Shown here: positions 17,814 through 59,549 of the stretch, piece after piece
How positions within the stretch are numbered: position 1 is the first letter of the stretch
Layout: every line of letters starts with the position of its first letter
From: Macrostomum lignano
Lineage: Eukaryota
DNA: 64,000 bases
Direction of reading: 5' to 3'
Assembly (NCBI GenBank): GCA_002269645.1
Contig: NIVC01000346.1
Location: 186,001-250,000 of the forward strand
Translations under genes and position numbers: made by a program
The notes under the pieces: generated by a model
Told to the model about the DNA's origin: nothing
The model's database searches: none
The model's input: the letters and a program-made list of their open reading frames with translations, nothing else

Positions 17814-18824
17814 ATGGACGCTAATGACGTAGTAGAAGCTTTGGCTGAAGGCATTAGAGACAGGCTAGACATCAGGAAGCACATTAGGATCCAAAAGTAC
17901 ACGCCTAATCAAGATATAGACGTATGGATTCAGGCTTTTGAGCAAAGGTGTATCGCAGATGAGATACCTGCAGCCGATTGGAAAAATGAACTACTATCTA
18001 ATCTAGATGTCCAATCAGCGTTTGCTATTGTGACAAGGCTGAATTTAGACCCTAATCTACCGTATGCTGAATTCAAGGATAGGCTCATCGAACGATTCAC
18101 GCATGCGGGTAGTGCTCAAGAAGCTAGAGAAGAATTCCGTAGCAGATACCAATCTAAGACAGAGAGCTCTGACGACTATGCGGAGAAGCTGACAGAGTTA
18201 GCCTATAGGGCATTTCCCCACCTTACTAATGACCAAAGACAGGAAGAAGTGGTGGAACAATTTATTAGAGGTGTTAGGATAACCCCAGAGGCTAAGGAAA
18301 AGCTACTGCTAGCACAGGCGAACACACTCCAAGAGATACGTCGAGTCTTGCGACGTATCGAAATGGCGTATACCATGTCTCGCCGAGGGAGAGATCCAGC
18401 TCAGTGCAAGGCAACTGGAGGAGATGAGGCTGAGAGTAGCTTGAGGGAGTTAGTCCGCAAGCAAGGTGAGACACTAGAAAGCCAGCAGAGGGTACTCCAG
18501 GAGTTGCTTCGACACCAGCAGAGTGCTGAGCAGAAGGCTAGGCAGAAGCCGTACCAAGGCCAGCAACAGGGCCAAGGTCAGAAGCAGCCAGTAAAGTGCT
18601 TCAAGTGTGGGAAAAGCGGTCACATAGCTAAGCATTGCCAGCAGCAGCAGAATCAGCCGCAGTTTCCGCAGCAGCAGTTTCCACAACCACCACAGTTTAT
18701 TCCGTACCAGCCGCAGTACCCGCCGCCGCAGTTCCCGCAGCAGCAGTTCCCGCAGCAGTACCAGAATAAGAATCAGGGAAACGGAGTAGCCGGAAGCGTA
18801 GGAGGCAACGCTTTCCAGAAGTAG
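17814..18824 (+). CDS. gag: Gag (336 aa) with CCHC zinc knuckle
   Basis: W...FE..C gag motif, zinc knuckle CFKCGKSGHIAKHC, Q/P-rich tail. Confidence 0.92.
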   Translation: MDANDVVEALAEGIRDRLDIRKHIRIQKYTPNQDIDVWIQAFEQRCIADEIPAADWKNELLSNLDVQSAFAIVTRLNLDPNLPYAEFKDRLIERFTHAGSAQEAREEFRSRYQSKTESSDDYAEKLTELAYRAFPHLTNDQRQEEVVEQFIRGVRITPEAKEKLLLAQANTLQEIRRVLRRIEMAYTMSRRGRDPAQCKATGGDEAESSLRELVRKQGETLESQQRVLQELLRHQQSAEQKARQKPYQGQQQGQGQKQPVKCFKCGKSGHIAKHCQQQQNQPQFPQQQFPQPPQFIPYQPQYPPPQFPQQQFPQQYQNKNQGNGVAGSVGGNAFQK

Positions 18825-21800
18825 ACAGCCAGCAGTCTGTAGCCTCGCAACCTGTAAATAGCAGCGATAGTTTTTCTGTAAATAGTGAATTGAATTCTTT
18901 GTATAACAGTAGACATGCGCAACCATTTAATCAATCATTTAATCAACCAAATATTTATTCTCAGCACTTTTCACACGCACCACAGCAACAACCTTGTTCT
19001 AGTAAGCAGCAAATTAAACCACAAAATTTAAGCGAACCAACTAAGAAGCAAAATTACGATCCGTATATTACTGGCAGCATTCTAAATAAGGAGGTAGTTT
19101 ATCTATTAGACACTGGCAGCAATAGGAACATTCTAGGACGTGAAACCTGGAAACACTTGTTCACTGGCAAGAATAGTCACTTAATTAAACAATGGAACAA
19201 TAGAATCGTATCGTTCACAGAAGAGCCGATTCCAATTAAGGGCTCCGTAGTTATTAAAGCAACATTCGGTGATTTTGAAGAAGAAATAGAGTTTCTCTTA
19301 TGTGACGCAGAAGTAGACAATGTAATAGGCGTGACGTTTGTCCAACAATATTGTAATGCTATCGACTTTGAGACAGGAATGCTAACTATGAAGCAGGGAA
19401 CCAGAATTCCACTTCGTTCTACCAGAGCTAAGCCTCAGGTTAAGAGAATCTATGTTGCAGAAAAGACGACAGTTCCAGCTAATAGTTCAGGATTAGTCAA
19501 GGTTAGATTAGCCACAGGTAGTGAATCCAATTTCGGAGTGCCGTCAGTTGTTGAGCCACTCAAATCAGGATTGAAGACTAGAGCAGAGAAGGTAACTGTA
19601 GTGCCAAGTCTAGTAACTTTGAGACAAGGAGAAGCTTATCTGGAAGTGATTAACACCAGCTCACAGGAAGCTAGAGTGCCAGCAGCAGCACTAGTAGGAA
19701 TGGCTAAGCCACTTTTAGCTAGTGAATTAAACTATCTTAAAGATCAACCAGAGAAAGAGCAGTTATGCCAGAATAAGAACACGCAGTTTTGCGAAAACAT
19801 CAGACAGGTTCAAGACAAGTCAGAAGACTGGATTAGTGAGATTAACATAGGAAATGAACTGACTCAGGAGCAGAGACAGAAGGTGATTGAGGTCGTCAAG
19901 GAGCATTCAGCAGCTTTCTCGCAGCACGAGTTAGACTTAGGCAGAACGCATTTAGTCACACATGAGATTATCTTGAAGGACAACAACCCAGTTCAGATAC
20001 CAGCTAGAAAGATTCCACCTCATTGGATCAAGGAGGTAGATGAGCAGTTAGATCTCATGTTGGCTAGAGGCATCATTAGGCCTAGTTACTCGCAGTACTC
20101 GACTCCATTAGTCATAGTACCTAAGAAAGATGGTTCGCTGAGATTAGTTAACGACTATCGAGCACTAAACAACAAATCGGAGTACTTTCCGTATCCAATA
20201 ACTAATATTAATGAAACATTCTCATGTCTCCATGGAGCCAGTCAATTTTCTACGTTAGATCTATTCTCAGGATATTATCAGATAGCTCTTAGGGAAGAAG
20301 ATAAATGCAAAACTAGTTTTCCAACTTTACATCGAGGCTCGTTTGAGTACGAAGTTTTGCCAATGGGATTGCAAGGAGCTCCAGGAACTTTCCAAAGGTG
20401 CATGAACTTAGTTCTTAAGGACATTGCACAGAAGTTCGCCATAGCTTACTTAGACGATGTAATAGTTTATAGTACAGACTTTGAATCTCACTTAGAACAC
20501 CTGAAAGAAGTGCTCAAAAGACTAATCCAAGCTAATATGAAACTAAAAGCGAAGAAATGTCACCTTTTCAAATCAGAACTGCAATATCTAGGACACGTCA
20601 TAGGCAAATCAGGAATTAAAAGGGATGCGTCAAAGTTAGAAACGATTAGGAACTGGCCAAAACCTAAATCTGTGACAGAGCTTCGAAGTTTTCTCGGACT
20701 CTGTAACTATTATCGAAAGTTTGTTAGAGATTTCGCCGAGGTAGCAGCACCACTCTGTGAGCTAACGAAGAAGAACATCAAGTGTATCCAGGACAAATGG
20801 ACCAGGATTCATGATGAATGCTTCGAGCTGTTGAAGGAACGGATGTGTTCCGAAGAAGTGCTTGCTTACCCAGAGTTTAATACAGACCCCCAAGTTTATT
20901 TTGTGTTAGACACTGATGCATCGGATGTCAGAATTGGGGCGGTCTTAAATCAAGTGCAGAGCGACGGAGTTGAGAGACCGATCGCGTATTATAGTCGAAA
21001 AATGAGGCAGTCAGAAAGTAGATACCCGATTACGAGGAAGGAGCTTCTAGCGATTGTTGACTCGCTGAAGTACTTCAGGTTTTACCTCGTAGGGAAACGT
21101 TTTAAGGTGCGCACTGATCACAATGCCCTAACCTGGTTGCTTCGCCAGACCGAACAGACAGGCATTTTAGGTCGTTGGATCGAGAGACTTAGTGAATTTG
21201 ATTTTGAGATTGAGCATAGAAGTGGCCCTAAGCATGTGAATGCTGATGCTCTATCCAGGATCCCGGATCCTCAACAGGATGAGTCATCCCCATATGCCAG
21301 GTCGCTTAGCTGTAGGGCAACTGTGAACACAGACCCAGCATCAGCTGTTACTGTGAGCTCAGGCAATTCCGCGCAAGCCGAAACCTGTAGTCTACACAGT
21401 GGAGTTACGTCATGCTGTTCGCCGCAGAATATGGCGCCGAACCGACACAATACTCCGAGTTTTAGTAGCAGGTTGCTAAGCAAAAGGCAAGAACAGGAGC
21501 CTAAGGAAAGGCACCCGCTTGTTTGCAATGCACTGCTGAGTGATTACCTTCGTAGCCCGGTGCGTCGCGAAAATTTGGTCGCAGCTCAGCTAGCTGACCC
21601 CGCACTAAGCTATGTCAGGAATCTGATTGAGTCTGACTTGCCGAAACCGAACTTTCAAGAAAGACTAGAATTGTCTCACGAGATTAGAAATCTGCTAGGT
21701 TATTATGAACTCTTCAGGATAGAAGACGGTGTTCTCCGAATAGACTTAAATTTAGGGCGGACCGAATCTAAAGTGGTGTTGCCCAAGTCTTTGGATGGTG

Positions 21801-22813
21801 AAGTTTTTCACGAATTCCACGATTCACCGTTAGCAGGTCATCTAGGAAGAGATAAAACTTATCAGCGAGTTAAGGAAAGATTTTGGAGAGTAGGATTAGC
21901 TACAGCAGTCGAAAAGTACGTCGCCAAGTGCAAATCTTGTTTAGAAAGTAAATCAAGAAAGCGATGCAAGGCACCAGTGCAGAATTTTCCTATTGTCGAG
22001 CCATTCTCACGCCTTCACATTGATTTGATAGGTCCGATCAGTCAGACTAGCAAATCTGGTAACAAATATGTCTTGTCAGTTATTGACAACACTAGCAAAT
22101 TTCCGTTTGCGTTTGCAATTAAAAATCAGAAGGCTAAGACAGTAATCAAAATTCTGCAGGAGCGAGTTTTCGCCGACTTTGGAATACCTCAGTGGATTCA
22201 CACAGATCAGGGAACACAATTTACAGGGAGAGCATTTAGGAAATTTCTAGACCTCTATGGGATTAGGCACACTAGGACAACAAGCTATCATCCACAAAGC
22301 AATGGGCTAGTAGAAAATTTAAACAAACAAATTAAGTCAATTCTTACCTGTTTGCTCGAGAAAGAACATGCGAACTGGGATGTTCTTTTGCCCGGTTGTA
22401 TAACCGCATTGCGCACCAGCACGCATACAGCCACAGGTTTCAGCCCGCATTATCTTGTGTTTGGAAGAGAGGCCCGGATGCCGAGTGACAATGTGTTCCA
22501 GCAGCCAAAGGCGTTCGCCGATCTGCCTGCTTATGTTCAAGAGCACTTGACTCACCTGCAAGAGGGGCAAGAACTCGCCAAACAGCGGCTCAAATTAATA
22601 CAACGTAAGCGTGAGCAGCACTATTCTAACAAACCTAAACAACCAGACTTACCTATAGGGAGCTTAGTTTTCATTAACAACCCAGTCATCACACAGACAG
22701 AAGCCAACAAGTTCCACAGGAAGAGAAGAGCAGTCTACGAGGTCATAGAACAGTTATCAGAAGTAGTTTACAGGATTAGATTATTAAACAAAAGGCTAGA
22801 AAAGAGGAATTAG
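18770..22813 (+). CDS. pol: Pol polyprotein (protease, RT, RNase H, integrase)
   Basis: LLDTGS, YYQI/YLDD, LDTDASD, HDSPLAGH..C..C, HIDL/TDQG/ENLNK. The listed ORF 18890-22813 starts at TTG, but the frame is open from 18770. Confidence 0.97.
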   Translation, partial: ESGKRSSRKRRRQRFPEVDSQQSVASQPVNSSDSFSVNSELNSLYNSRHAQPFNQSFNQPNIYSQHFSHAPQQQPCSSKQQIKPQNLSEPTKKQNYDPYITGSILNKEVVYLLDTGSNRNILGRETWKHLFTGKNSHLIKQWNNRIVSFTEEPIPIKGSVVIKATFGDFEEEIEFLLCDAEVDNVIGVTFVQQYCNAIDFETGMLTMKQGTRIPLRSTRAKPQVKRIYVAEKTTVPANSSGLVKVRLATGSESNFGVPSVVEPLKSGLKTRAEKVTVVPSLVTLRQGEAYLEVINTSSQEARVPAAALVGMAKPLLASELNYLKDQPEKEQLCQNKNTQFCENIRQVQDKSEDWISEINIGNELTQEQRQKVIEVVKEHSAAFSQHELDLGRTHLVTHEIILKDNNPVQIPARKIPPHWIKEVDEQLDLMLARGIIRPSYSQYSTPLVIVPKKDGSLRLVNDYRALNNKSEYFPYPITNINETFSCLHGASQFSTLDLFSGYYQIALREEDKCKTSFPTLHRGSFEYEVLPMGLQGAPGTFQRCMNLVLKDIAQKFAIAYLDDVIVYSTDFESHLEHLKEVLKRLIQANMKLKAKKCHLFKSELQYLGHVIGKSGIKRDASKLETIRNWPKPKSVTELRSFLGLCNYYRKFVRDFAEVAAPLCELTKKNIKCIQDKWTRIHDECFELLKERMCSEEVLAYPEFNTDPQVYFVLDTDASDVRIGAVLNQVQSDGVERPIAYYSRKMRQSESRYPITRKELLAIVDSLKYFRFYLVGKRFKVRTDHNALTWLLRQTEQTGILGRWIERLSEFDFEIEHRSGPKHVNADALSRIPDPQQDESSPYARSLSCRATVNTDPASAVTVSSGNSAQAETCSLHSGVTSCCSPQNMAPNRHNTPSFSSRLLSKRQEQEPKERHPLVCNALLSDYLRSPVRRENLVAAQLADPALSYVRNLIESDLPKPNFQERLELSHEIRNLLGYYELFRIEDGVLRIDLNLGRTESKVVLPKSLDGEVFHEFHDSPLAGHLGRDKTYQRVKERFWRVGLATAVEKYVAKCKSCLESKSRKRCKAPVQNFPIVEPFSRLHIDLIGPISQTSKSGNKYVLSVIDNTSKFPFAFAIKNQKAKTVIKILQERVFADFGIPQWIHTDQGTQFTGRAFRKFLDLYGIRHTRTTSYHPQSNGLVENLNKQIKSILTCLLEKEHANWDVLLPGCITALRTSTHTATGFSPHYLVFGREARMPSDNVFQQPKAFADLPAYVQEHLTHLQEGQELAKQRLKLIQRKREQHYSNKPKQPDLPIGSLVFINNPVITQTEANKFHRKRRAVYEVIEQLSEVVYRIRLLNKRLEKRN
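18776..18846 (+). promoter_or_regulatory. -1 ribosomal frameshift signal (G GGA AAC plus stem-loop or pseudoknot)
   Basis: Heptamer at 18776-18782 in gag phase; the pol frame opens after TAA 18767-18769. Stem GGAAGCGT (18792-18799) pairs with ACGCTTTCC (18808-18816); loop GAGGC can pair with GCCTC (18842-18846). Confidence 0.8.
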
Positions 22814-37684: not shown

Positions 37685-40262
37685 CTATATAGTTACGAGC
37701 GTATCCTTAGAATTGTCGAAATCATTCAGCTGTTTCTTGCTCCATTGACCCTGAACAATGCCAAAGCATTCGATCCATCTTTTCAAGCAGTTTTCTTTCG
37801 TCGATCCGCAGTCTCCAACAATGAGGCATTGGAAAGATTGGCTGCTGCTGCTGCTTTGATGTCGGCTTTGATTTTTTAGCGGCGCCAAACTTAGTGTTCC
37901 ATTTGCGTAAAACAACACCTGTGAGCCTTGTTGGGTAAATCCGTATCCCATATCTGACGGAAGTGAACCAACAGGAAAACTGCCCTTGGTTCCGAAGTAA
38001 TTGTACCTTTGCGGAGCAGCTGCCGGCATGTAACGGTACCACAGTTTTCGGTTGCGCGGTCTGGCAACCAACCTGCATCCCAATTGTCCACTTTCACCAC
38101 AGTCTCTGATGCAAAAAAATGGCGTTGCTGGTGTCACTAAAATTTTACGTTGAAATTTGCAGTTAAGTTAGACTTTCTACAGCTGCATACGGATTAATCT
38201 AGAATCTTTATTCTCTTTTACAATCACTTACTTCTCGTGCAAAAATAGTCTGGCTCGCATGAACACGGTCACATTTGGCTCGGGCACAAACAGAACCTCG
38301 ATTCCGTCAGCCGTGCTCACACCGATGAAGGAGCCAGACTCTCCCGTCACGAACGCGACCACAGACCGGTTGAGCACAGCCGACACGAGCACCGGAGTGT
38401 GCGGATTCCGGTGCACAGACGCCAGGTTGAACGAGCCCACACGGAAGTGGTACAGAATCCGCAGCGAGCTCACCGCGATGCTGCTGGGCAGGTCGGTCGT
38501 GTGAGCTGCAATTCGATAACGATGTAACGATATGAGCACAGCTGCAGTCACACACTGCATGGGCACAGCTGCAGTCACACACTGCATGGGCACAGCTGCA
38601 GTCACACACTGCATGGGCACAGCTGCAGTCACGCACTGCATGGGCACAGCTGCAGTCACACACTGCATGGACACAGCTGCAGTCACGCACTGCATAGGCA
38701 CAGCTGCAGTCACGCACTGCATGGGCACAGCTGCAGTCACACACTGCATGGGCACAGCTGCAGTCACGCACTGCATGGGCACAGCTGCAGTCACACACTG
38801 CATGGGCACAGCTACAGTCACGCACTGCATGGGCACAGCTGCAGTCACGCACTGCATGGGCACAGCTGCAGTCACGCACTGCATGGGCACAGCTGCAGTC
38901 ACGCACTGCATGGGCACAGCTGCAGTCACGCACTGCATGGGCACAGCTGCAGTCACACACTGCATGGGCACAGCTGCAGTCACACACTGCATGGGCACAG
39001 CTGCAGTCACACACTGCATGGGCACAGCTGCAGTCACGCACTGCATGGGCACAGCTGCAGTCACACACTGCATGGACACAGCTGCAGTCACGCACTGCAT
39101 GGGCACAGCTGCAGTCACGCACTGCATGGGCACAGCTGCAGTCACACACTGCATGGGCACAGCTGCAGTCACGCACTGCATGGGCACAGCTACAGTCACG
39201 CACTGCATGGGCACAGCTGCAGTCACGCACTGCATGGGCACAGCTGCAGTCACGCACTGCATGGGCACAGCTGCAGTCACGCACTGCATAGGCACAGCTG
39301 CAGTCACGCACTTCATGGGCACAGCTGCAGTCACGCACTGCATGGGCACAGCTGCAGTCACGCACTGCATGGGCACAGCTGCACTCACGCACTGCATGGG
39401 CACAGCTACAGTCACGCACTGCATGGGCACAGCTGCAGTCACGCACTGCATGGGCACAGCTGCAGTCACACACTGCATGGGCACAGCTGCAGTCACGCAC
39501 TGCATGGGCACAGCTGCAGTCACGCACTGCATGGGCACAGCTGCAGTCACTCACTGCATGGGCACAGCTGCAGTCACGCACTGCATGGGCACAGCTGCAG
39601 TCACGCACTGCATGGGCACAGCTGCAGTCACGCACTGCATGGGCACAGCTGCAGTCACGCACTGCATGGGCACAGCTGCAGTCACGCACTGCATGGGCAC
39701 AGCTGCAGTCACGCACTGCATGGGCAAAGCTGCAGTCACGCACTGCATGGGCACAGCTGCAGTCACGCACTTCATGGGCACAGCTGCAGTCACGCACTGC
39801 ATGGGCACAGCTGCAGTCACGCACTTCATGGGCACAGCTGCAGTCACGCACTGCATGGGCACAGCTGCAGTCACGCACTGCATGGGCACAGCTGCATTCA
39901 CTCGTGACTTCTTACCCTGCTGGAACTTTGCCAGCCTCCGCCTGTTCACAAACGAGTCGCATTGGCCGTGTCCGTACAGCCATGCAGTGAGGAAGGCCTC
40001 GGCAGTCGCCAGCAGACACCAGCGATGCTCACCGACCATGCTGGCAGCTGCACAGCTCTCTGTTGTGTGACAGCTCAGCACGCAGCCAGCGATGCTACTG
40101 TCAAGCAGTTGATGAAGCGCCAGCCTCCTTACTCCTCCAGTAATAGAGAGCAAGAGACGGACAGGCGCGCAGTCTTTCGTAGTCAGTTATGCCTATGGTA
40201 TCCGCCGAAGAGCCAGAGAGGTAGCAGCAGCAAAGGGCGAAGTATGCAATGAGATTTTTCAT
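37685..40262 (-). CDS. Secreted protein gene with PAN/apple-like N-terminus; exons 40262-39916, 38505-38232, 38105-37685; frame break in exon 1
   Basis: Signal-peptide-like MKNLIAYFALCCCYLSGSSA at 40262; SIAGCVLSCHTTESCAAAS..CLL in the +1 frame. GTAAG donors at 39915 and 38231, CAG acceptors, phases 1 and 2 consistent to TAG at 37685. Confidence 0.6.
38536..39899 (+). repeat. 27-bp minisatellite GCACAGCTGCAGTCACGCACTGCATGG, about 50 copies, filling an intron
   Basis: Direct reading; lies between donor 39915 and acceptor 38506 of the minus-strand gene. Confidence 0.95.
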
Positions 40263-45338: not shown

Positions 45339-46080
45339 GCTCATTTTAGCGCCGCAGGCACTCATTTTGGCGCCACAGGCACTCATTTTGGCGCCGCAGG
45401 CACTCATTTTAGCGCCGCAGGCACTCATTTTCGCGCCGCAGGCACTCATTTTAGCGCCGCAGACAACTCATTTTAGCGCCGCAGGCACTCATTTTAGCGC
45501 CGCAGGCACTCATTTTAGCGCCGCAGGCACTCACTTTACCCCCACAGGCACTCATTTTGGCGCCGCAGGCACTCATTTTAGCGCCGCAGGCACTCATTTT
45601 GGCGCCGCAGGCACTCATTTTAGCGCCGCAGACAACTCATTTTAGCGCCGCAGGCACTCATTTTAGCGCCGCAGACAACTCATTTTAGCGCCGCAGACAA
45701 CTCATTTTAGCGCCGCAGACAACTCATTTTAGCGCCGCAGGCACTCATTTTAGCGCCGCAGGCACTCATTTTAGCGCCGCAGGCACTCACTTTACCCCCA
45801 CAGGCACTCATTTTGGCGCCGCAGGCACTCATTTTAGCGCCGCAGGCACTCATTTTGGCGCCGCAGGCACTCATTTTAGCGCCGCAGACAACTCATTTTA
45901 GCGCCGCAGGCACTCATTTTAGCGCCGCAGACAACTCATTTTAGCGCCGCAGACAACTCATTTTAGCGCCGCAGACAACTCATTTTAGCGCCGCAGGCAC
46001 TCATTTTAGCGCCGCAGGCACTCATTTTAGCGCCGCAGGCACTCATTTTAGCGCCGCAGGCACTCATTTTGGCGCCGAAG
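45339..46080 (+). repeat. 21-bp minisatellite GCACTCATTTTAGCGCCGCAG, about 35 copies
   Basis: Direct reading with recurring GACAACTC and TTTACCCCCACAG variants. Confidence 0.95.
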
Positions 46081-47208
46081 GCGCTATATATTGGCGCCCT
46101 GAAGAAAAATTATTGATTACTACAACGAGCCACAAGGTGGGGTGGGGGGACAAAGCATTGGCATGTCCCCCCCAGAGCTTTTACTGGAGGGAAATGTCCC
46201 GCCCCCCCCCCGGTGACGACGCGCCTGCTTACACCTAGAATACCGGGGAAGAAACCACCTGCATGTAGAGAACATTTACATACAAGATTAGATCCACACA
46301 CGGGCAGATTTTCGTATAAGGGTAGAATATACATTCTTGCAGTTATCTTTAAACGATCCAAGTTTTTCAAACTTTAAAAAAATTCCTGTTTTTGCTTCTG
46401 ATATGCTGGAGATAATTCAGCTCTACCAAAAAGCAGTGAAATGCTCTCCTAGAAAAATCTTTTATTAGCATTTAAACCCCAAAAGGTTAAAGAAAGCTTT
46501 TATGCACTGGAGTTTAATTTTTTTGCAACTTAGTTAATGGACTAGAGCGTTATGGACAAGCAAGCATACAAATATTAGAGATTTAGTATATTTAGATATT
46601 CAAAGAATATTCCATGTTCTGCCGTCATATTCTATTTACGGTCTGCTTTCTTCTCCAAGCCTCTTTGTGTGCTCAGTGCTCACTTTGCGACCCCCCTGGC
46701 TAGTACAAGCTTTCCTTTTGTGTAATGTGTAAACCCTCTTAAGTTCGAAGGCGGCAATCTCATTCTGTCTGCCAGCCCACGTACAGCCCTTGAGTACATT
46801 GACAGCCAAATAAGAACTTAGCCCCTGACCTTTCATTGTACTGTGGCTATCAACTTTCTAATAAATTAAATTGGTCTCGTTTGAGTTTCATAGTTGCGTT
46901 TTTTAAAGCATTTGTCCTATGCTAATGTGGATTGGCTTTAGTCAAGGGCTCAAGTAAAGAAAAGTTGGTCCGCGAGCGCAAACCCACCCCCAGGTTGAGG
47001 GGGGGAGGGTGCTCTGGTGTGGCAGGGCTCAGTCAGAATAATAGAATACACCGCTCTACTTTCATTCCATTTGCACAGTGGAAATTTCCGGGAAACCTTC
47101 CACTGTAGACGGCCAACGCGGGACAAGTTAATATATGTATATAACCAGACTAGAAACTGGAATTCTTATTTTATAGGGTGCTACGGAACTCAGTGAGGCC
47201 CGCCAGCC

Positions 47209-50200
47209 ATGGCAGTGAGTTACGCAGCCAAGATCTATACGAAAGATCGGCTATTCTTCATCAAGTTGCTGTTCCGCTGGGCCGGCAGTGTTTGGCAGTT
47301 GTTGTGGGTTGACTTCCTGGTGTTCGTCGCTTTGTACGTATCACTGGCGGTGCTGTACCAGCTAATCCTGTACAATGACGCCAAGATGAAGGCTACATTC
47401 GAGGTCACAGTGAGCTGGTTGAAAACTGTCAGCACATCCGTGCCGCTTTCGTTCATGCTCGGCTTTTTTGTATCGTCCGTTGTGCAACGGTGAGTTGCTT
47501 TATATTTAATTTTTAAATATATATTCTCGTAATATCGATGAATGTAGGAGATATTTGAAACAGCTTTTGTGCTTTGAATTGTTTTATTTTTATGTTAATT
47601 CTAGATCTCATAACCTACTGTAATATTGGATCGAACCTTGACAGCTTTTAAGGTCAATATAAAAAAGAAGATACTGCATATTTTGTTTTACTTGACACTT
47701 AAACATTTTTGTGCACTGAAGGGTCACATGACCGCTTCATGAATAAGTTGTGCATAAATATAAATATTTTTATATTCTAAGTGATTTATGCTATTCACAA
47801 TGCTTAATTAGCCAAACTGCATGCCCCAGTGACCCAGTTGAAATGGTAAAAAAAAGTTATAAGAAATACACAAAGGTCGCATGCTCTAATGGATTTTATG
47901 AAAGTAATCCCGATTGCTCCGTAGAATAAAGTATATATAAAATGAAAGGTTCCTCCAGTTAATTTCGGCGCGTAAGTTCACATACCCTCAATAATTAAAA
48001 TATAACAATATCCGCTTGATTGAACACCCCTTCAACAGCTGGTGGTCCGTCTGCATGTCCATACCATGGGTGCAGACTCCTTCATTCTACTGTCAGGCCC
48101 TCCTGGACAGCCCGAAAGCCAGTAGGAGCGATCTGGCCAGAAAGTTGCGAATCACCGTGCTGAGGTACCTGAACCTGGCCTGGATCCTCATGATGGCTCG
48201 GGTGTCGCTTCACATCAGAGAACGATTTGGTTATTTCGAACCGAAAAGCAAAACTAAGAAGTTCAAGCACACGTGGAAACGGCGTCTAAAAATGGTCAAC
48301 TCGGACATTAAAGTGCAGAAATATTTTGGCCAGCTGGTTACGGACAATGAGGTGCTGGCATTCGGCCGATCTGCTCAATTGTCAAGCGAGAACAAGCATT
48401 CTTACGACCCGGAGTACTGGCTGCCGCTGGTGTGGGCCACCCGGCTTATTCGCAGGGCTAGGAACTTGGGTGAGTTTTTGTGTTTAGTTCTGTGACAACC
48501 TTAATGTCAGCTAATGTTTTAGCCGATTAGGTCTGGACTCGCATTGTTCAAATTTTAGCATCAAAAACGGTACATTTCTTGTCACAGTAGTGTACAAGTG
48601 CATTTTAGGGTCTCAAGGAGGTAGTAGCACTTTTTGGGATGCTTGGATTGTGGTTGTGGGACTGACACTTCTGGTTCTGCGACTGACACTTTGGGTTTAG
48701 GGACTGGCACGTTGGGTTGTGGGACTGATACTTTCGGTTCTGGGACTGACACTTTGGTTGCTTGGACTGACACTTTGGGTGCTTGGACTGACACTTAGGG
48801 TGCTTGGACTGACACTTAGGGTGCTTGGACTGACACTTAGGGTGCTTGGACTGACACTTAGGGTGCTTGGACTGACACTTTGGGTTCTGGGACTGACACT
48901 TTGGGTTCTGGGACTGACGCTCTAGGTGCTGGGGGCGCATCGATAACTAGTGTGTTTGGTTGTCACGGCCACCAATTCTGTGATGAGGCCTACCATTCCC
49001 TACCCCTCATCCAATCAAGGCAGAACAGCATTTTTGTCCTAAGATACGTTCTGCTTGAACAGAAACACAAGTGATATTTTAATATGTATTCATCCGTCAG
49101 ATTGCATTGCTAACGAAAGACACTGCCTGTGGCTGATGGACATTGTCCAGAAGTTTCGGTTTGATCTACAAAAGATATGGATGTACTCAGAGTTCAACAT
49201 CCCGCTAGTGTACACTCAAGTGGCTGTTACTGCCGTCTACCTTTACCTAGCGTGTACCATTGTCTCAACCCAGCTGATGGACTCCGACATTGTGCAGAGC
49301 AGCACCGCCACTTTCAACGTAAATGGCACTTACAGTCGTACCACGGGACAGCAGGTTCTTGCCTTCATTCCCCTGCTTGGAGGACTCGAATTTATTTTCT
49401 ACCTCGGTGAGTAAAAATTATGGAGGCCTTGTGAGAGCTAGAACTCGTTTAAGTCTCACGAAAAAAACCACGTATCGACGCATTAATTTGGGGTTTGCGC
49501 ATGAAAACCGGTCCAAAGGCTGTCGTGCTCGTAAAGGCAAACGTGCGATGCGCAGAGCATGTACATTGTCATGAGCTTAAGGATGAGAAACTTAGGACGC
49601 CTGTGTACGTAACTGTGTGCTTGTGTGTTCTCAGGGCTCAGCAGAATGACCTTACCATGACTGCTTGACCTGCCCGTTGAAAATGTTATCGTGACAAGGG
49701 TTGCTAGAGTCGTTGCAAACAGCTCAAAGTAGTGACTCTAGCGAGCCTGGGTCGACTATTGTGACTTTTTAATTACTAAAACGGCTGTAATGCTTCGGAG
49801 AGGCGAATGTTGAGTCACGAGCGCATTAAGTGAGTTGTAGAATCCCAAAAGAGTCTCGGAAAAAGTCGTCCAAGTGTGGTTGTGTTCGCGATTAACTTTC
49901 TACTGACTCAAGCACACTGAATATGGTTGTTATAGGAAGCAAAAATGCGAAATGCGATTCAAATTCATGGAGTGACGCAGATGCAACTCAGTGAATCTAA
50001 AGCGATTATAGCACGCCTGAGATACGATTCTACGACCCATTCTAGAAGCGCAGGCAACAAAACGCCTCAACTGACTCTTAGATGACTCTGACGACTTTTT
50101 GTGACTTGTACCGTGATATTTCTGAGCCTGCAACGACTCTGAATTGACTTTAGGGCGACGCAAGTGACTCTGGGTTGCTTCTTGGCCTAGGTTCTGTTAT

Positions 50201-51771
50201 CATTGAGCTGACGTTTGACTGTACGCAAACACAGTGACTAGCTGTAACACAATGGCAGAAATTTGCACAAGCAAGTTAAGTATAGTAAATTTGGCACGCT
50301 TGGCTTATGTCGGTTGTTTGATTCGCAAACAACGTGGATAATTTTCATACTTTCAGGCTGGTTCAAAATCGGCATGTGCCTCTTAAACCCAATGGGCAAG
50401 GACGAGGCCGACATCCCCATGTCCGACATACTCAACTCAAATCTGAAGGGGGCCATCAAGATGGGCGGAGCTGAGGACAGCATTTTTCCACGAGGCCTGA
50501 CTGACAGCGGCGAAGCGGAGGAAGCTCAGGTGAAAATTTGCATTTAAGTTTGCTCCAATCACTCCATTTCCAGACACGAGAGCTGGCTAGAGATGTGCCT
50601 GTAGGAAACCCCTTGAAAAAGACATAGTGCGTCGATATTTTGTAATCAATAACTCATTGACAGAAGAAACTACTCAAGTCTATGCCATGAGCAATTTCTT
50701 GAAAGTCCTTCAGTGCAGACTTGCACATTTCATTTGTGACTCGTGCACAAATATTGAGGAGTTTATCTTCCCTGTACGCCAGGGGTTCGGTGTAGCCTCT
50801 CTATCCGGCCCTCGATCGGGTCCTTTGAATCAATCTGGCCCGCTCAACGTTTGAGTCTCTTCTTAGCTCCCCTCTCTCGATCTAATCTCTCTCCTCTCTC
50901 TCATCTTATCTCATCTTCTCTCCTCTTCTCTCCCTTTCCTTTCCTCCCTCTCCTTTATTCCCTCACCTCCTTTCTCCTATCTCTCTTCTCTCTTCTATAT
51001 TCTCTCTCCTCTCTCTCCTCCTCTGGCCAGCAGTCATGCGATAGGTTCTCTTGACTTAAAAAAATTGCCTACCCTGCTGCACGCCGTTTGTTTTTGCGTA
51101 CCTGTCCTCCAGCATCTGCGACTTTGTGTGCTCAAGGGTCAACACAATAGACATTATTAAGCGATCTTCTTGAGCCAACAATCTTAAGCCTCGTGTTCTC
51201 TTCAATAGAATTTCTAGTTCCTACTAAAAGATTTCATCAAGTCCAACGCAACTTGTCCTAGGTGGCCGATTTCCTTGGCTGTTTCGATTTCTCGCAAGTT
51301 CACGCGCACGACAAATTCGGCAGCGCTGAGCAGACTGAACGGCAGCTCAACAAGGCCATGCTGAAGCGGATGCGGGATCGAGGCAAGCAGCTGGCCAGCA
51401 CGCACGGAGGCGGTCATGGTAGCCACGGCAGCCACAGGGACGGCACGCACTCCGCTGGCTCCCTAGCCGTCCCAAAGTCCGCGCAGTCTTCGGAGAGAAG
51501 CTCCATCCGGAAGAAGAAAGGTCGAAAGTTTAACGACGACAATCAGCTGACGGTCGGATCCAATGGCGACACGGTGCACTCGGCGACATCGCTTGGCGGC
51601 ATCAGCGGCTGGAAACTGCGGGCAGCCGTGGCCAAGTCGCAGAAGCTTCGATCGGGCAAAGCTGAGAGCAGCCTGAACGAAGAGCCAACACAGATCACGT
51701 TTGTTCGGGCAGCAGGTAACGTCCCGGCGGTTGCTGTGGTCGATGCTGACAGCGGAACAGATGTGAAGTGA
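47209..51771 (+). CDS. BEST: Bestrophin family chloride channel (566 aa); exons 47209-47489, 48039-48469, 49101-49406, 50357-50529, 51262-51771
   Basis: F.KLLFRWAGSVW, VPLSFMLGFFVSSVVQRWW, LRYLNL, IPLVYTQV, LLNPMGKDEAD. All introns are GT-AG with matching phases; CDS is 1701 nt. Confidence 0.92.
48650..48925 (+). repeat. 21-bp minisatellite GACTGACACTTTGGGTTCTGG in bestrophin intron 2
   Basis: About 13 copies, direct reading. Confidence 0.9.
50855..51025 (-). repeat. CT-rich tract resembling the reverse complement of the array's GA-rich segments, in bestrophin intron 4
   Basis: TCTCCTCTCTCTCATCTTATCTCATCTTCTCTCCTCTTCTCTCCC mirrors GATGAGATGAGAGAGAGGAGAG motifs. Confidence 0.55.
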
Positions 51772-53281: not shown

Positions 53282-54599
53282 CGAGGGGTGATCAAAAAGT
53301 TCTGCAACCTTTTGTTATAGCTTTTAGTTATAGAATCGGGAAAAGCCAAAAACTTACACATATGCAGCTGTATCTGTTTGCTATATTTATATGCAGTTTT
53401 GGCTTCCAAATGTGCTCCAGTAAAATTTCACAGCCATATATTTTCCAAGTGTTTTCAGTAGCTGATGGAAACAACAAAAGACAGTGTTCGCTTCTATATC
53501 TTTATGTGCATGCAACTTGGTTGCAAAGTGACTGAGATTCACACCGATCTGGTGAATGTTTTAGCTGACTCTGCTCCATCATTTGACATGGTTGCCCGCT
53601 GGCTGCACCATTTCTTGGAAGGCTGGGACAGCTTCAACGATGAACCGAGGTCTGGCTGACCCCGGACATCCGTGACCGAAGATGTCGTGGCCCATGCCGA
53701 TGCAATAATTCGTGAGGATTGGAGCATTATGCTAAGATTCATTGCCTATGAGCTTGGTGTCAGCTGTGGAAGTGCTCATAACATCATGCATGAGCAACTA
53801 GGCCGCACAAAGACCTGCGCTCGGTGGGTACCCCATCTTCTCACTCCGGAGCAGCAAGCAGAGAGGGTGCGCATCTGTCGCTTGTGGCTGCAAATTTTTG
53901 AGCCCCACGGCCCACGACGACTGTCGGATGTCATCACAGGAGACGAATGTTGGATCTCCTTCTTTTACCATGAAGGATAAGCAGTCCAACATGGTCTGGC
54001 TGGCAGAAGATGAGCCAAGGCCTGAGGTGCTGAAGACCGGATTCCGCAGTCGGAAGCGGATGTTCACCATTTTTTTCAACTCTCAGGGTGTTGTATCGGT
54101 GAACATCCTTCCAGCGGGTGCCACAGTGACTGCCAGGTACTACACAGACACTGTTCTGCCAGGCGTGCTGCAGGAGCGGCAGGAACGTGCGCGAACCAGG
54201 CATGGACCTCGACTCCTGCTGCACCATGACAATGCGGCACCGCACAGAGCGGCATCAACCATGGCGTACCTGGAGCAGCAGGGGGTCCGGCTGCTGCCCC
54301 ATCCACCCTACTCTCCAGACCTAGCACCTTGCGACTTTTGGCTGTTCCGAGGATCAAATCCGTCATTTCTGGGAGGCCGTTTTCACGCATGCAAGACCTT
54401 GCCCAAGCGGTACATTCAGCTCTACAGGGCATACCAACTTCGGAGTACCAGGACTGCTTTCAGACATGGTGCACACGGATGCGACGGTGCATAGATAGTG
54501 GTGGAAAGTACTTTTAGGGAATGTGACACTGATTAGACGCCTCGGCTGCTGTAGCACAGAGTTGTGAGGTCACTTGCAGAACTTTTTGATCACCCCTCG
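53282..54599 (+). mobile_element. Full-length defective mariner (DD34D) transposon, 1318 bp
   Basis: TA TSD; 26-bp TIR CGAGGGGTGATCAAAAAGTTCTGCAA; WVPHLL, ITGDECW, HHDNAAPH, HPPYSPDLAPCDF; stop at 53657-53659 and two frameshifts. Confidence 0.95.
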
Positions 54600-57402
54600 T
54601 ACGTGCGTGGAGACATTATTCTTGGCACGTGCACGAAAATTGTGCTCTTCTTGTCCAGGATTAGCTAGCTCCCAAGGCACAACTTCCTTGTGCGTGTATC
54701 CCTTGTAAATCTTTTATCTTACATCTTCAGGTCAGCTGGTATCTGCACAAATGCCGTCAGAGCAGCGATGTATTTCAAGCACAAGACGCGTGAAAATATA
54801 CGTAGAATAAAAAATTAACATAGAAATCTAATTTTCTGAACAAAATTTTTATAAATATCGATAGAGCAATAAAAAAGGCACAACAGATCAAAAGATGAAC
54901 ACTGGATCTGCCTCCTATCAAAAGTAATAGCAATTTTTGTGCTGAAAAAATGAAGATTTCCTATCTCCGTAGTGTATTTTTTCGGGAAAAAGTGCCTTCA
55001 AAAATTTTCTAAGAAACGAGGCTTCCCGTCCTTCTACTTGAGTCGTCCTTGCTTAAAACGTCCTCAAGACTTTATTTCTGTATCTATACTGTAACCGTAC
55101 GTACATTGATTGCATTGTGTAAGGAGAAAAGAAGTTAAGCAGGATTCTTGCAGCAGAGTCGGAAAGACAAAAACATAAGTGATAAACAGGCAGAGCGAAA
55201 GAAAACAGTACTATGAGCAAATAAGCAGGAAGTAATATAGCAAACATGTCAAGTGATAGAGGAGAGGAGTCATAGGCTCGATCGCCAGAAGAATATCTAA
55301 AAATTCATGAAGATTATTGTTCTGTGCAACCGATTCCGCACAGATAGACCATGAAGCTCGTCGCGACTAGCCTTTTCGATGTGTTTAGAACGCAGGAGGA
55401 AAAAGAATTCGGCAAAGAAGGAAATTAGCTGCGGTCCGTGGTTGTTGCTTAAACTGTTGCAGGTCAGTGAGTCAATGAGTTGCAAGTCCATTGCCAGCGC
55501 GAAAGAAGATTTATATTTACTGAGAACATTTTTATCGACGACGGCAACTGAGTCTGGTGGCTGAGCGATTTTGTCTTGCTTATAGTTGATACATGCATTT
55601 TCTAAGTGTGATATGTCTTATATTTCTGAGCATCGGCTTTGTACACCATTCTAGCCACAACTTGTGCCATAGATTAAAAAGCTTGGTGACCGGAGGGGGT
55701 GGGTGGATTCTAAAAATCGGCTTCAGATTTTCATCCTTATCGGCACTCTATACTAGGCGACCTCAATACTCTTTGGGAGCAACCAATTTGAGAATTTTGG
55801 CGCGCTATTAATCCTTTCCACAGTTGTGCAAGCCTTAGACAATAGAAAATAACAGATTTCATTAGACAGACAGATATGGCAAACGAAGAATTTAGCGAGC
55901 AGAGCAGTGACGAAAGTTTTGCTATAGCCCAAGGTGCAGTGGATGAGCATCGTGAGAGACACGATTGTTCTCGGCTTATACTGTATGCCATGGTTTTGCC
56001 TTTGCCTGTTTTGATTGGTTTCTCAGAAATCAAAGTGTTAATGTCAATAGTTTTTTGATATGCCATCTATTTGCAGACGTTATTTCAGTGAACTTATTCG
56101 TAAAAGATATACGAGCACTGTGAAAGGGATTAATTGTGCGCCCAGATTCTCAGATTGGTTGCTCCATAGACCCCCTTTTGGGCCATAGACAATGGATAAA
56201 TAATCAGAGGTCCCAGTGCGTGACAACGATTGTCTGCCGAGCGCCGGTAGGCGCGAGCCATAGACAAATCGTTGTCACGTGCTGCGATCGCTGATTCTTT
56301 GCATTGTTATGCTGCTTGACGATCCTACACACAGTGCATTGTTTGTAGTAATATATTTTTCTGCATAAAAAATGTGAATAATGATCATCAAAGGCAACAG
56401 CTAATAAAACTAAAATACAAGCTACACGAAATGAGTTCGTGATAAATTATGTCGCAGTGCACTTAGTCAGTTTTTAGTCGAAATTTGACGATGTAATAAT
56501 CAATTTCTCACCCAAAGCGGTAGTTCTCAAAGATGCTCGACACTTTAGACTCATGATTTAGCACTGCAAAGAGGAATGCGGCAGTTCCGGTATGTCTTCA
56601 TTATTGCCTTGGTCGTTCTCCAGCCAATGAAGGAATTCAGACAATAGCGTTGCTGCTAAATAAACTTTCTGTATGTCGAGTAAGTCTGCCCATTTTGCAC
56701 TGATGTTATTGAAGTTACTTGTGACATCTGAATTGATCCGAGGTTCTTTGCCATAGACACTTATTGGCACTCGGCTGGCGAGCTGAATGCATGCGTTTCT
56801 GCTATGCATGACAGATTTGAAGTTACTTTTCACCGACTTGAAGTGGAAAGGTATATTTTATGCTCCAAAAACTTCAACAGATATTAAAAATTTGATATCG
56901 GAGAGAGACATGTATAAATAATTTATTGCTCAATTTTTTCTCATTCAAAAAGTAGAATTGTCAGTAGAGCTACCAAAAAGGGACTTTATAGTTAAATAAA
57001 CTACATGTACACAACATGGTAGCAACTTTGTCACCTGGTGCCAGTGTTGAAGCTCCAGAAGCTCTGCCTGAGTAAAGGCCAGTGACCAACAAAGTCAGAG
57101 CTGATGCAGACACGTGGTCGACGTTCTGATGAAACTTGGAGGCTCGGCGAGGCCAGGTTGAGACGCAGTGCTGATTGGCGCACAGGGGTGTACTAAATAC
57201 ACTAGCGCGCAAAAATCCGAACTTCTGGAAGAATTTTTGAATATCTCGACGTGATTCTTGATGAAAAGGTGCGCAACAAAAGATCTAACCGTGTTTTTGG
57301 ATTTCGTGTGCCTGCGATGCTCCGCTCCGGTGCAGAAAAATTGTCACGGGGGAATTTCCTCTCAGGGTATCTGATGGCGTCTGAGCAAATCTCTCTTCTC
57401 CC

Positions 57403-57518
57403 TGAGCATATGGCATCCGAGCATGTGATATCTAAGCATTTGGGATCTGAGCATATGGTAATCTGAGAATATGGTATCTGAGCATATGGTATCTGAGCAT
57501 ATGGTATCTGAGCATATG
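57403..57518 (+). repeat. 15-bp minisatellite ATCTGAGCATATGGT
   Basis: About 7 copies, direct reading. Confidence 0.85.
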
Positions 57519-58134
57519 AACAGAAGAGTATAATAAAAATGTGCATGCAAACACGATAAAAAATAAATAACATAGGTTCAAACTGGTTTCAGCTCACACA
57601 GTTAATCTATAAACCAAGCGACCCTGAAAGTTGTTAAATAAGTTTTTAAGTAGACAGTTTGCGAACACGCCCAAGTCCAAAAGTGGCATTGAACTCTACT
57701 GCGAACTCTTATAGCAATTTCAGTTGAGAACAAAAGAGCCTGCTGCTCATTACTCCCAAGACCAGCTAGCGCCACTGGGCACGTTGCGACTCAAACCAGC
57801 GCAATTTTAGCTATTGTCCTCAAACTACTTGAGAAGCTCAATAAGTGCTATCTACTCGTATAATACATTGCATGCAGGCAACAAATTCAATGCAAAGCTG
57901 AGCTACTCTCAAATGGACTGTCAAAGAATAAGGCCAATGCAGTAGCATTCAAGTTCAATTCCCTTAGGGCCTTGGCAATGAGTGAAGAATGGACAATAAA
58001 GCTAATATATGGCTAGGACAGTCGGGGTTGGGGGTTTAACCATTGAAGGAAATTTTTAAAGACCGGAGCACGTGAAGGGGACACAGTGGACCCCCCGCGT
58101 TCCAACGACCGGAAAAACGTGCTGATTTCTACAC

Positions 58135-58142
58135 TATAAATA
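58135..58142 (+). promoter_or_regulatory. TATA box of the peptide precursor gene
   Basis: TATAAATA about 100 nt upstream of ATG 58240; AATAAA downstream at 58836-58841. Confidence 0.65.
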
Positions 58143-58239
58143 CAGGGCCCTTGGATGCCCAGCGGACAACCAAGCAGCCAAGGCTAGATAACTCTACTCC
58201 AGCTTCTCAGCTTCATCAGGCTACAGCTACAAGTTCATC

Positions 58240-58476
58240 ATGAGGTGGCAGTTTGTTCTCGGACTCCTGCTGTGCGCAGCTCTGGCCGCCGCCAGGCCCA
58301 GCAGCCAGGAGATGTCGGAGGAGGACACCAAAGCGATGGCGGCGCTGGAGGCTCTGGCTGACTTGGACGAGCCGGAGATGACGGACGAGAGGGCCGCTCA
58401 GCTGCAGAAGAAATTCCGCATCAGAATCAGGTGGGGGAGGGTTGCCAGAAATGTGTTAAGGCTCCTTGGCAAGTAA
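58240..58476 (+). CDS. Prepropeptide, candidate amidated cationic antimicrobial peptide (78 aa)
   Basis: Signal peptide (aa 1-18), acidic propiece, KK site, FRIRIRWGRVARNVLRLL then G-K-stop; good Kozak context (TTCATCATGA); GC-rich codons. Confidence 0.8.
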   Translation: MRWQFVLGLLLCAALAAARPSSQEMSEEDTKAMAALEALADLDEPEMTDERAAQLQKKFRIRIRWGRVARNVLRLLGK

Positions 58477-59179
58477 GTAGACTGCAGTCAGGTACTCCGC
58501 TGCACCCACTGACCTCGGACACGGACCGGACACCGCCCATGATTGCCGGATTTCAACTCTGGGACTCAATCTGAATATTTGTAGTTGCTAACTATGTACT
58601 TTATTGTTGGCTGAAATATATAATATTAACTGCACTGGAATTAATTTTGTACCTGAACAAATTACTACCGACAAAAACTTAAATCTTTTTCGAGTTTTGA
58701 GTTCAAATTTTTTAATTCATTAGCATTGGTATATGCGGTCTAGAGACCCGCAGCTTTGATACATTCAAGCTGAGCAATTTACTCAGCTTTTCAAGTACTC
58801 ATTTACTAAGGCAAAACATTTGCATTGCAGCAAGCAATAAAATTTACATCCATTTTTTTATAACATCAGTGCAAAATGGGAAGACTTACTCGACATACAG
58901 AAAGTTTATTTAGCAGCAACGCTAAAATCGAAGGCTCATTTTAGGTATGGATCCAGCTAGTCACAAAATGACTCAGTAAAATCATGAGCTGGTGTGTAAA
59001 CTAATGAATAACAATTAGTGTTAGTGAAGTGAATTCTAGCTTTAAAAAACATGATCGAAAAAATGCATTTAATGGGAAGGGAGTAATACATTCCACACAA
59101 TTTAATAGTCTCTGATTGATGGAAAATGACAGAAGTCTCGCATCATGATTAAAACTTTCATTATACAAAACAAACGGAA

Positions 59180-59549
59180 ATGCACATGCGGCTCGCCTAT
59201 TTACATTGCCTCGCAACTAGGCCATCATGCTGTGTTTAATTTACTCTTAAAAGCGCAAGCAAACGTTAATCTGCAAACTGACACGAGGCTGTCTCCGCTC
59301 TTTATTGCGTCACAGAATGGTTACCATGAGCTGGTTGACTCACTCATAAACGCTCAAGCTGAAGTCAATGTCAAAGACTCCGAAGGCTGCACGCCAATCT
59401 ACATTGCGTCGCAGAACGGTCACTATGGCGTGGTGTTGTCCCTCGTCAGGGCTCATGCTGACTTTGAAGCGAGAACTGTTACGGGTGAGACTCCCCTTCT
59501 AATTGCAAGCGTCAATGGACATCACCGAGTTGCTGCCTTGCTTGAATAA
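59180..59549 (+). pseudogene. Ankyrin-repeat fragment (about 4 repeats), no clear start
   Basis: SPIYIASQLGH, SPLFIASQNGY, TPIYIASQNGH, TPLLIASVNGH at 33-aa spacing; stop inside the fourth repeat. Confidence 0.7.

Follow-up and report, generated by a model that had tools for sequence, protein, structure and literature searches.

Introduction

It is well established that amphibian skin peptides of the dermaseptin/brevinin type are made as precursors with a signal peptide, an acidic propiece, a dibasic cleavage site and one C-terminal cationic peptide, often ending in Gly(-Lys). Their genes form multigene families in which the prepro region is kept and the mature part diverges sharply, with synonymous change raised in the mature part as well. 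Here we describe a gene of the same layout from the flatworm Macrostomum lignano. It lies in a stretch of 64,000 nucleotides (contig NIVC01000346.1 of assembly GCA_002269645.1, positions 186,001 to 250,000 of the forward strand), referred to as the window and numbered from its first letter. The gene belongs to a multigene family of the same evolutionary habit (denoted the M[KR]WQ family) and encodes the predicted amidated peptide FRIRIRWGRVARNVLRLL-NH2. A first-pass annotation of the window, made from the letters alone, had proposed it as a candidate for a new antimicrobial peptide (AMP) gene.

The resemblance to the amphibian precursors has clear limits. Cleavage is at KR in the frog precursors and is predicted at KK in the window gene, and frog genes split the coding region, whereas the window gene has a single coding exon. 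The M[KR]WQ peptides are Arg-rich rather than Lys-rich and, unlike the frog peptides, some comprise only 6-10 residues. The Pfam family of the frog signal peptide and propiece, PF03032, gave no match to the window protein at E<=1 and none to 20 family members at E<=0.1. The shared layout is best described as an analogy, not as membership.

Cathelicidins offer a second parallel, since there too one conserved pro-region is combined with very different cationic C-terminal peptides; those of the M[KR]WQ family include helical-looking, strand-like alternating, Pro/Arg-repeat (P0005) and aromatic/Arg-rich types. No Pfam match to the cathelin domain was obtained with the window protein or the 20 members, and the window propiece contains no Cys. 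The M[KR]WQ propiece differs from that of the cathelicidins in being a 38-residue acidic spacer, the peptide is probably released by a convertase and not by elastase, and it is predicted to be amidated. The arminins and periculins of Hydra are likewise lineage-restricted and combine an anionic N-terminal part with a cationic C-terminal part. Periculin is Cys-rich and arminin peptides are Lys/Arg-rich with about 30 residues, and homology to either is not expected.

The closest chemical counterparts are the designed beta-sheet amphiphiles (IRIK)2-NH2 and (XR)n amides, which follow the same alternating hydrophobic/cationic, C-amidated design. The family peptides FVRVRVRL-NH2, IFRVRVRI-NH2 and WLRVRARVRI-NH2 have alternation indices of 0.86-0.89, and the window peptide alternates likewise in its head, FRIRIRW. 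The designed amphiphiles are synthetic and of measured activity, whereas the M[KR]WQ peptides are gene-encoded predictions.

A secreted prepropeptide gene

The open reading frame (ORF) at window positions 58240-58476 (+) encodes a prepropeptide of 78 amino acids, in the order MRWQFVLGLLLCAALAAA / RPSSQEMSEEDTKAMAALEALADLDEPEMTDERAAQLQ / KK / FRIRIRWGRVARNVLRLL / GK / TAA. When re-read from the sequence, the elements named in the first-pass annotation (TATA box, ORF, signal peptide, KK, 18-mer, GK and stop) were each found where it had placed them. Its counts of 11 Asp/Glu in the propiece, and of six Arg, no acidic residue and no Cys in the 18-mer, were reproduced, and the host-defence-type layout that it had recognised, consisting of signal, acidic propiece, dibasic site, cationic peptide and Gly-Lys, can be read directly from the ORF.

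The coding sequence (CDS) has a distinct composition, with a GC content of 0.61 and a third-position GC content (GC3) of 0.79, against a GC content of 0.33-0.48 in the flanks. This contrast, together with the conservation of the frame in paralogues elsewhere in the genome, where indels are multiples of three, argues against a chance ORF. In the GenBank annotation of Mlig_3_7 (GCA_002269645.1; NIVC01000346.1, 301 kb), the ORF is a called gene for a "hypothetical protein" with an uninterrupted, single-exon CDS of 237 nt. This annotation was built only from genome-guided and de novo RNA-seq transcripts, trimmed at experimentally mapped trans-splice and poly(A) sites before TransDecoder was applied (PMC5730564). 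Because the annotation derives solely from transcripts, the presence of a gene model in the window implies that the gene is transcribed. Several of the paralogues are modelled as "partial" proteins starting with translated 5' leader, a mark of transcript-derived ORFs. The window ORF is almost certainly a genuine secreted-prepropeptide gene of the M[KR]WQ family.

The stop codon overlaps a perfect GTAAGT, and in an older MAKER annotation a family member is joined to a Sushi-domain protein (model P0004, 634 aa). Both observations would fit an ORF that is not the final product, being either spliced at 58472 into a longer protein, as the first-pass annotation had cautioned on account of the donor-like motif at 58473, or a chance frame. 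We consider this very improbable indeed. The codons AAG-TAA, when followed by GTA, give GTAAGT automatically. The position of the stop is kept in all paralogues, the other copies reading AAG-TAG-GTA, AAG-TAG-GCC or AAG-CGC-TGA, whereas the donor motif is not kept; GTAAGT is thus a by-product of AAG-TAA-GTA. Moreover, the in situ hybridisation (ISH) primers for the transcript RNA815_1838.3 match the paralogue L005a exactly (L005 9977-10000 and 10320-10340), where they span 364 bp of genome covering the 5' leader, the entire CDS and 73 nt past the stop. The probe predicted from the transcript is also 364 nt long (Table S11 of Brand 2020, PMC7336406). The equal length on genome and transcript shows that the L005a mRNA is unspliced across its stop. 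P0004 comes from an ab initio annotation of an older assembly, whereas the CDS of the window gene is unbroken in the transcript-based one; its GC3 value and the frame-keeping indels likewise speak against a chance frame.

Promoter module and transcript end

All 13 promoter copies compared, which represent both subfamilies and a contig of the Logan collection (promoters of L001, L004, L005, L006 and the window), contain a core-promoter module, CGGAA-A[AC]ACGTG[CG]C, located 12-16 nt 5' of [CT]ATAAAT. In purely descriptive terms, it consists of an ETS-like GGAA beside an ACGTG core. Its conservation across both groups suggests common regulation.

At the 3' end, the closest paralogue (L001/L002) has AATAAA where the window reads AATATA (58615-58620), and a 501-nt paralogue transcript fits a short 3' untranslated region (UTR). 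The compact TATA-ORF-AATAAA unit described in the first-pass annotation therefore stands in part: the AATAAA is present at 58836, and lies outside the block conserved with the paralogue, which ends at about 58620.

A Macrostomum-restricted gene family

The first paralogue found was P0002 (89 aa, BOX15_Mlig030644g1), whose prepro region is 86% identical to that of the window protein and whose peptide, WLLRRIRIRWRRVLRVASRVYRIYRYLPI-GK, is different and longer. A two-sequence profile of the window protein and P0002 was run with HMMER against 1.84 billion representative proteins and yielded 10 matches; a second profile, built from those 10, yielded 23 clusters at 90% identity, with an E-value of 1.1e-30 for the window protein. 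Every named member is an M. lignano "hypothetical protein" or a mis-fused older model. In total, at least 25 M. lignano gene models share the signal peptide, acidic propiece, KK and core-promoter module. The search for paralogues with a conserved prepro region and a variable mature part, which the first-pass annotation had recommended, is thus clearly positive.

The sole exception to an M. lignano origin is Logan contig SRR31628392 (L004, 929 nt), which encodes at 541-813 a member with the Pro/Arg-repeat peptide FLRVRLPRVRMPRVRLPRVRLPRLRVRFRWSKK and also carries the family promoter module. It stems either from M. lignano, as a divergent copy, or from another species of Macrostomum. The same profile search returned no relative that could be assigned outside M. 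lignano. Judged from these matches, the family appears to be Macrostomum-restricted and tandemly amplified.

The signal peptide of the family follows the pattern M[KR]WQ[LFI][AV]LGLLLC[AV]ALA, and the propiece has a core of the type A-x-x-A/V-L-E-A/T-L, followed by KK; the window protein fits both. Among 20 members, M1, Q4, L7 and G8-L11 of the signal peptide are invariant, and L36, E37, L39, K57 and K58 are invariant or almost so. The C-terminal peptides are of a different kind. They range from 6 to 46 residues with widely different sequences. The stop codon comes straight after G, GK or GKR in 20 of the 24 distinct predicted peptides, the window peptide among them (FRIRIRWGRVARNVLRLL-GK-stop). 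The 24 peptides contain on average 34% Arg, and only 2 of their 456 residues are acidic. What is kept across the family is charge, hydrophobicity, near-absence of acidic residues and amidation ends, and not a specific sequence.

The window gene falls into a long "RIRIRW" group, in which its peptide is the shortest and the only one without internal dibasic pairs. A short group encodes alternating peptides of 6-10 residues, such as FVRVRVRL-G, IFRVRVRI-G, WLRVRARVRI-G and FIHIHF-G. Outliers are a Pro/Arg repeat (P0005, FLRVRLPRVRMPRVRLPRVRLPRLRVRFRW...) and a Tyr/His/Arg-rich 46-mer, which was found via the literature. Arg content becomes extreme in members such as LFFRRRRRRHYFVYHSRRRYYRRR...

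Two tandem clusters were found, with copies in both orientations. The first contains five long-group copies in 27 kb, two of them broken (one without ATG and with a premature stop codon, the other frameshifted in the signal peptide), and the second contains five short-group copies and a fragment in 20 kb. Such clusters with pseudogenes are the birth-and-death pattern of effector families. One model, BOX15_Mlig001477g4 (P0013, 139 aa; L005 10001-37330, NIVC01001664.1), is a chimera spliced over 27 kb that joins the start of one family copy to one complete copy, and additional 5'-leader copies are located at L005 33495 and 35138. Searches with the locus by tblastn and blastn revealed no second copy within the 64-kb window.

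Comparison with known domains gave no assignment. PDB sequences contained no match at E<=10. A Pfam match to DUF5324 (E=0.029) is at chance level. PF22991 ("Lock_Gag1-like") matched 17 acidic-propiece residues in 10 of 20 members, and we judged it a low-complexity artefact because the cut-off was reached only in one member with a duplicated segment. The earlier statement that the peptide matches no family thus holds for known AMP families (Pfam, PDB), and requires correction in that the gene is a member of a large and so far unnamed family of Macrostomum genes.

Divergence is concentrated in the mature segment

Similarity between the window and the closest paralogue locus, L001/L002, spans 57936-58620 and then ends; beyond 58620, identity drops to 42%, the level of unrelated sequence. 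The promoter motif and the TATA box are 100% identical between the two loci and the propiece is 84% identical, whereas identity in the mature segment falls to 76%, with 33 gap columns that all come in multiples of three. No other part of the transcription unit, the untranslated parts included, has diverged as far. Nonsynonymous divergence amounts to 0.28-0.36 in the mature segment and to 0.05-0.085 in the prepro region; the corresponding synonymous values are 0.37-0.57 and 0.18-0.23.

Among long members, pairwise Nei-Gojobori dN/dS of the mature part ranged from 0.35 to 1.11, estimated from only 17-34 codons. We do not claim positive selection, nor a dN/dS above 1, in the mature part. The overall pattern is compatible with diversifying selection, with focal hypermutation or with gene conversion that spares the mature part.

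Chemistry and shape of the window peptide

With a net charge of +6 and an amphipathic sequence, the window 18-mer has the cationic, amphipathic character of gene-encoded antimicrobial peptides. The first-pass annotation had described it as an alternating RIRIR strand joined to an amphipathic helix. The periodicity of both parts is significant when compared with shuffled sequences: FRIRIRW has a moment of 1.68 at 170 degrees (strand, p=0.006), and GRVARNVLRLL one of 0.96 at 100 degrees (helix, p=0.001). AlphaFold2, run with a 20-sequence alignment, returned a low-confidence model (pLDDT 64, pTM 0.25) with helices at residues 3-18, 28-41 and 52-76. The 18-mer forms a single helix in this model, not a strand plus a helix, and the model is too weak to decide between the two.

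Predicted processing and function

The following processing steps are modelled on established secretory-peptide processing. Signal peptidase would cut after Ala18, and the anionic propiece (net charge -8) would mask the cationic peptide (+6) in transit. A prohormone-convertase-type enzyme would then cut after Lys57-Lys58, a carboxypeptidase would take off Lys78, and peptidylglycine amidating enzymes would convert Gly77, giving FRIRIRWGRVARNVLRLL-NH2 as an 18-residue amphipathic polycation. The released polycation may bind anionic surfaces such as microbial membranes and act as a host-defence (antimicrobial, membrane-active) effector. The family as a whole would represent a diversified peptide library, comparable to the cathelicidins or the frog skin peptides.

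Because charge, hydrophobicity, freedom from acidic residues and amidation are kept instead of sequence, the target is likely to be physicochemical in nature (anionic membranes, polyanions) and not a specific receptor. Such a target makes host defence the best reading of the family. Independent AMP predictors agree with this reading for three paralogues. For the window peptide itself, we put the chance that it is a host-defence effector at about even.

Several points weigh against this reading. KK is a rarer convertase site than KR or RR, and KK processing together with a C-terminal Gly is equally typical of neuropeptides. The dN/dS ratio in the comparison with the closest paralogue is raised in the mature segment (0.40-0.84 versus 0.26-0.40 in the prepro region) but does not exceed 1, and synonymous divergence in the mature segment is raised as well. 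Relaxed constraint would fit these values too, as would gene conversion if it leaves that segment out. Furthermore, the window peptide was not found among the entries examined of the AMP list of PMC10414684, which make up part of that list.

A last point of this kind comes from expression records. In Table S11 of Brand 2020 (PMC7336406), the ISH pattern for RNA815_1838.3 is given as "gonads" and attributed to Ramm et al. 2019. No other in situ record concerns a close paralogue, and this one would suit a reproductive role too. The study by Ramm and colleagues reportedly dealt with socially sensitive genes. Positional RNA-seq yielded 93, 94, 49 and 176 reads for the same transcript in fragments A to D, and assigned it to class [0,0,0] (PMC4490696). 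It is accordingly as abundant in the head-only fragment as in the fragments that hold the gonads, at a modest level and with no regional bias. For this paralogue, the ISH record and the non-regional RNA-seq signal conflict. The probe and the window gene share 89.7% identity over 174 nt, so that the probe may detect the window gene as well; because of this similarity, and because RSEM shares reads among paralogues, neither dataset is specific to one paralogue.

On these records, a reproductive role has to be taken seriously as an alternative, more so than a neuropeptide role. The peptide could be secreted from or near the gonads and act on gametes, eggs or the partner, with fast evolution driven by sexual selection and not by microbes. 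The "gonads" pattern, obtained with primers that match L005a exactly and with a probe that may extend to the window gene, fits this explanation, as do the fast divergence of the mature part and the restriction of the family to one genus. Reproduction-related genes of Macrostomum are known to evolve rapidly (PMC7336406). The equal abundance in the head-only fragment speaks against a reproductive peptide, the conservation of charge and hydrophobicity instead of sequence suggests a physicochemical target rather than a specific receptor, and expression in gonads is compatible with host defence. Germline- or egg-protecting antimicrobial peptides exist in other animals, such as Hydra periculin, insect andropin and the ceratotoxins; periculin is expressed maternally and in the germline, which provides a precedent for the gonad signal. 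On balance, we regard a reproductive function as unlikely, if well worth keeping in mind.

A neuropeptide or peptide-hormone precursor, whose amidated C-terminal peptide signals via a receptor, would carry the same standard marks as the window gene, i.e. a signal peptide, a dibasic site and a C-terminal Gly. Flatworm neuropeptide precursors share signal peptide, basic cleavage sites and a C-terminal Gly as amide donor with the M[KR]WQ precursors, and presumably the processing enzymes as well. The short subfamily even gives amides of neuropeptide size (6-10 residues, e.g. FVRVRVRL-NH2), which may loosely recall the flatworm (A/G)FVR(I/L)amide peptides. Conservation is reversed, however. In neuropeptide precursors the mature peptide is expected to be conserved, whereas in the M[KR]WQ family it is the least conserved segment and varies from 6 to 46 residues behind a prepro region that is kept. 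More than 24 distinct peptides in one genome, tandem arrays and pseudogenes also distinguish this greatly expanded family from flatworm neuropeptide precursors. The profile search of 1.84 billion proteins found no orthologue in other flatworms and no relative that can be assigned outside Macrostomum. The single ISH record, for a paralogue, gives gonads and not nervous system, with RNA-seq reads of the same transcript present in the head-only fragment as well. A neuropeptide function is quite improbable.

The peptide could also serve as an extracellular polycation of another kind, for example as a digestive or prey-lysing peptide of gut or pharyngeal glands (acting on diatoms or bacteria) or as a deterrent toxin; acting as a counter-ion, it might also serve to condense anionic secretory material. 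The extreme Arg content of the family, including members such as LFFRRRRRRHYFVYHSRRRYYRRR..., and the presence of transcripts in the head-only fragment are in line with such roles, and the architecture by itself says just "secreted cationic peptide". If the peptide digested or deterred by lysing membranes, its mechanism would overlap with that of host defence, and we consider these alternatives improbable as separate explanations.

Relation to previous work and significance

According to a recent survey, the AMP repertoire of flatworms is undescribed. A computational AMP screen (Irvine et al. 2023, PMC10414684) lists, among the entries examined, three M[KR]WQ paralogues, BOX15_Mlig001477g4, Mlig008283g1 and Mlig025063g1, which were AMP-positive by 72.7-90.9% of tools; none was assayed there. 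They stand as "ungrouped" or "same genome" among more than 16,000 items, the shared prepro cassette is unrecognised, peptide boundaries are cut at internal RR sites, and Macrostomum is absent from the main text. In the literature searched, neither the peptide nor its signal peptide occurs in any paper, nor do eight paralogue gene identifiers, and searches for Macrostomum together with AMPs or neuropeptides found no description of the family. The gene identifiers do not occur in the supplements of Wudarski 2017, Grudniewska 2018 and Mouton 2018. The word "new" in the first-pass annotation is thus justified for the family, its cassette, promoter, clusters and amidation ends and for the window peptide, none of which we found described; it is not justified for the gene as such, which is annotated, nor for the three paralogues in the 2023 list.

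Judged from sequence, the M[KR]WQ genes are a lineage-restricted new family built on the known host-defence-peptide plan. They may even be, and here our confidence falls a little short of even, the first gene-encoded AMP family recognised in Platyhelminthes. A genus-restricted cassette of promoter, signal peptide and acidic propiece would drive a radiating library of amidated, Arg-rich peptides. The library would include natural (hydrophobic-Arg)n amides of 6-10 residues, which anticipate the designed minimal beta-sheet antimicrobials, in addition to helical, Pro/Arg-repeat and Tyr/His/Arg-rich forms, and selection or focal hypermutation would diversify its mature segment.

A family of this size, with well-marked limits, would close the flatworm AMP gap. 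RNAi, ISH and transgenesis are all established in M. lignano, a model flatworm, and the roughly two dozen predicted peptides are short, Cys-free, amidated and cheap to synthesise, some having 8 residues. The common promoter module could report on the pathway that controls the family. In addition, a single genome lets one study a conserved prepro cassette beside a fast-changing mature segment, a puzzle known also from frog skin peptides, conotoxins and cathelicidins. If the function proved reproductive, a hermaphrodite would have supplied a new class of reproductive peptides that evolve rapidly.

Features of the locus and its surroundings

Table 1. Features of the peptide gene in the window. 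Identities refer to the closest paralogue (L001/L002).
Feature	Position	Strand	Basis or remark
Upstream region common with the closest paralogue, 84% identity	57936-58108	+	alignment
E-box CACGTG	58069-58074	+	read from sequence
Family-wide promoter motif CCGGAAAAACGTGC	58109-58122	+	copy alignment; 100% identical to L001/L002
TATA box TATAAATA, 105 nt 5' of ATG	58135-58142	+	sequence; 98-107 nt in paralogues
5' leader including the probable transcription start (from the TATA position), 94.7% identity	58143-58239	+	
Signal peptide MRWQFVLGLLLCAALAAA, DNA 100% identical	58240-58293	+	predicted cut after Ala18, -3/-1 rule
Acidic propiece RPSS...AAQLQ, 38 aa, 11 D/E, net charge -8	58294-58407	+	family motif AMAALEALAD-LDEPE
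Lys-Lys, predicted convertase site; second Lys almost invariant across the family	58408-58413	+	
Predicted mature peptide FRIRIRWGRVARNVLRLL, charge +6, no internal dibasic pair	58414-58467	+	
Gly-Lys, predicted amide donor and basic residue for trimming; G, GK or GKR in paralogues	58468-58473	+	
Stop TAA, overlapping the donor-like GTAAGT at 58473-58478	58474-58476	+	
Conserved 3' UTR, 92% identity, ending at AATATA (58615-58620)	58477-58620	+	
AATAAA of the first-pass annotation, alternative poly(A) signal candidate, 360 nt after the stop	58836-58841	+	outside the conserved block

The gene is enclosed by an inverted repeat of 65 nt (56645-56709 and 58860-58924; 98% complementary), whose arms flank 2.15 kb comprising a minisatellite and the whole peptide gene. 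Both arms begin with TA at their outer ends; a MITE-like pair of terminal repeats is one possible origin, a local inverted duplication another. Transposon capture was considered as the means by which the family spread and was not adopted; the 65-nt arms are absent from the paralogous loci. The enclosed minisatellite (15 bp, 57402-57518) lies about 0.8 kb upstream of the gene and is common to the paralogous loci, where it has grown to about 1.1 kb (L001 7950-9100; L002 1170-2320).

Just 3' of the gene, a dispersed repeat (58634-59187) is 72-74% identical to L001 1-727, L001 19278-19830 and L002 12495-13047. The match of L001 1-727 extends over window positions 58479-59187 (74%) and begins right after the position of the stop codon, which suggests a further gene copy just upstream of L001. 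An ankyrin-repeat ORF (59145-59549 (+); Ank_2, E=2.9e-38) is situated about 670 nt downstream of the peptide gene, and a bestrophin gene model upstream of it, at 48240-51771.

The remainder of the window is rich in repeats. Intact-looking ORFs of an LTR retrotransposon occupy 17814-22813 (+), namely a gag ORF with a zinc knuckle (17814-18824) and a pol ORF of 1307 aa with reverse transcriptase, RNase H and integrase (18890-22813). An ORF with partial mariner-type transposase/DDE domains (53898-54494 (+)) is probably a transposon remnant. No Pfam match was obtained for the minus-strand ORFs in 6001-10000, a region of strong GC skew (0.45-0.50) with repeated units of 80-110 bp at 6233-6543 and from 8675 (printed 8675-829). 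Large minisatellites are found at 13536-16185 (23 bp x 117), 38532-39901 (27 bp x 51) and 45340-46082 (21 bp x 35); the second of these, with 96% matches, gives rise to ORFs exceeding 400 aa on each strand.

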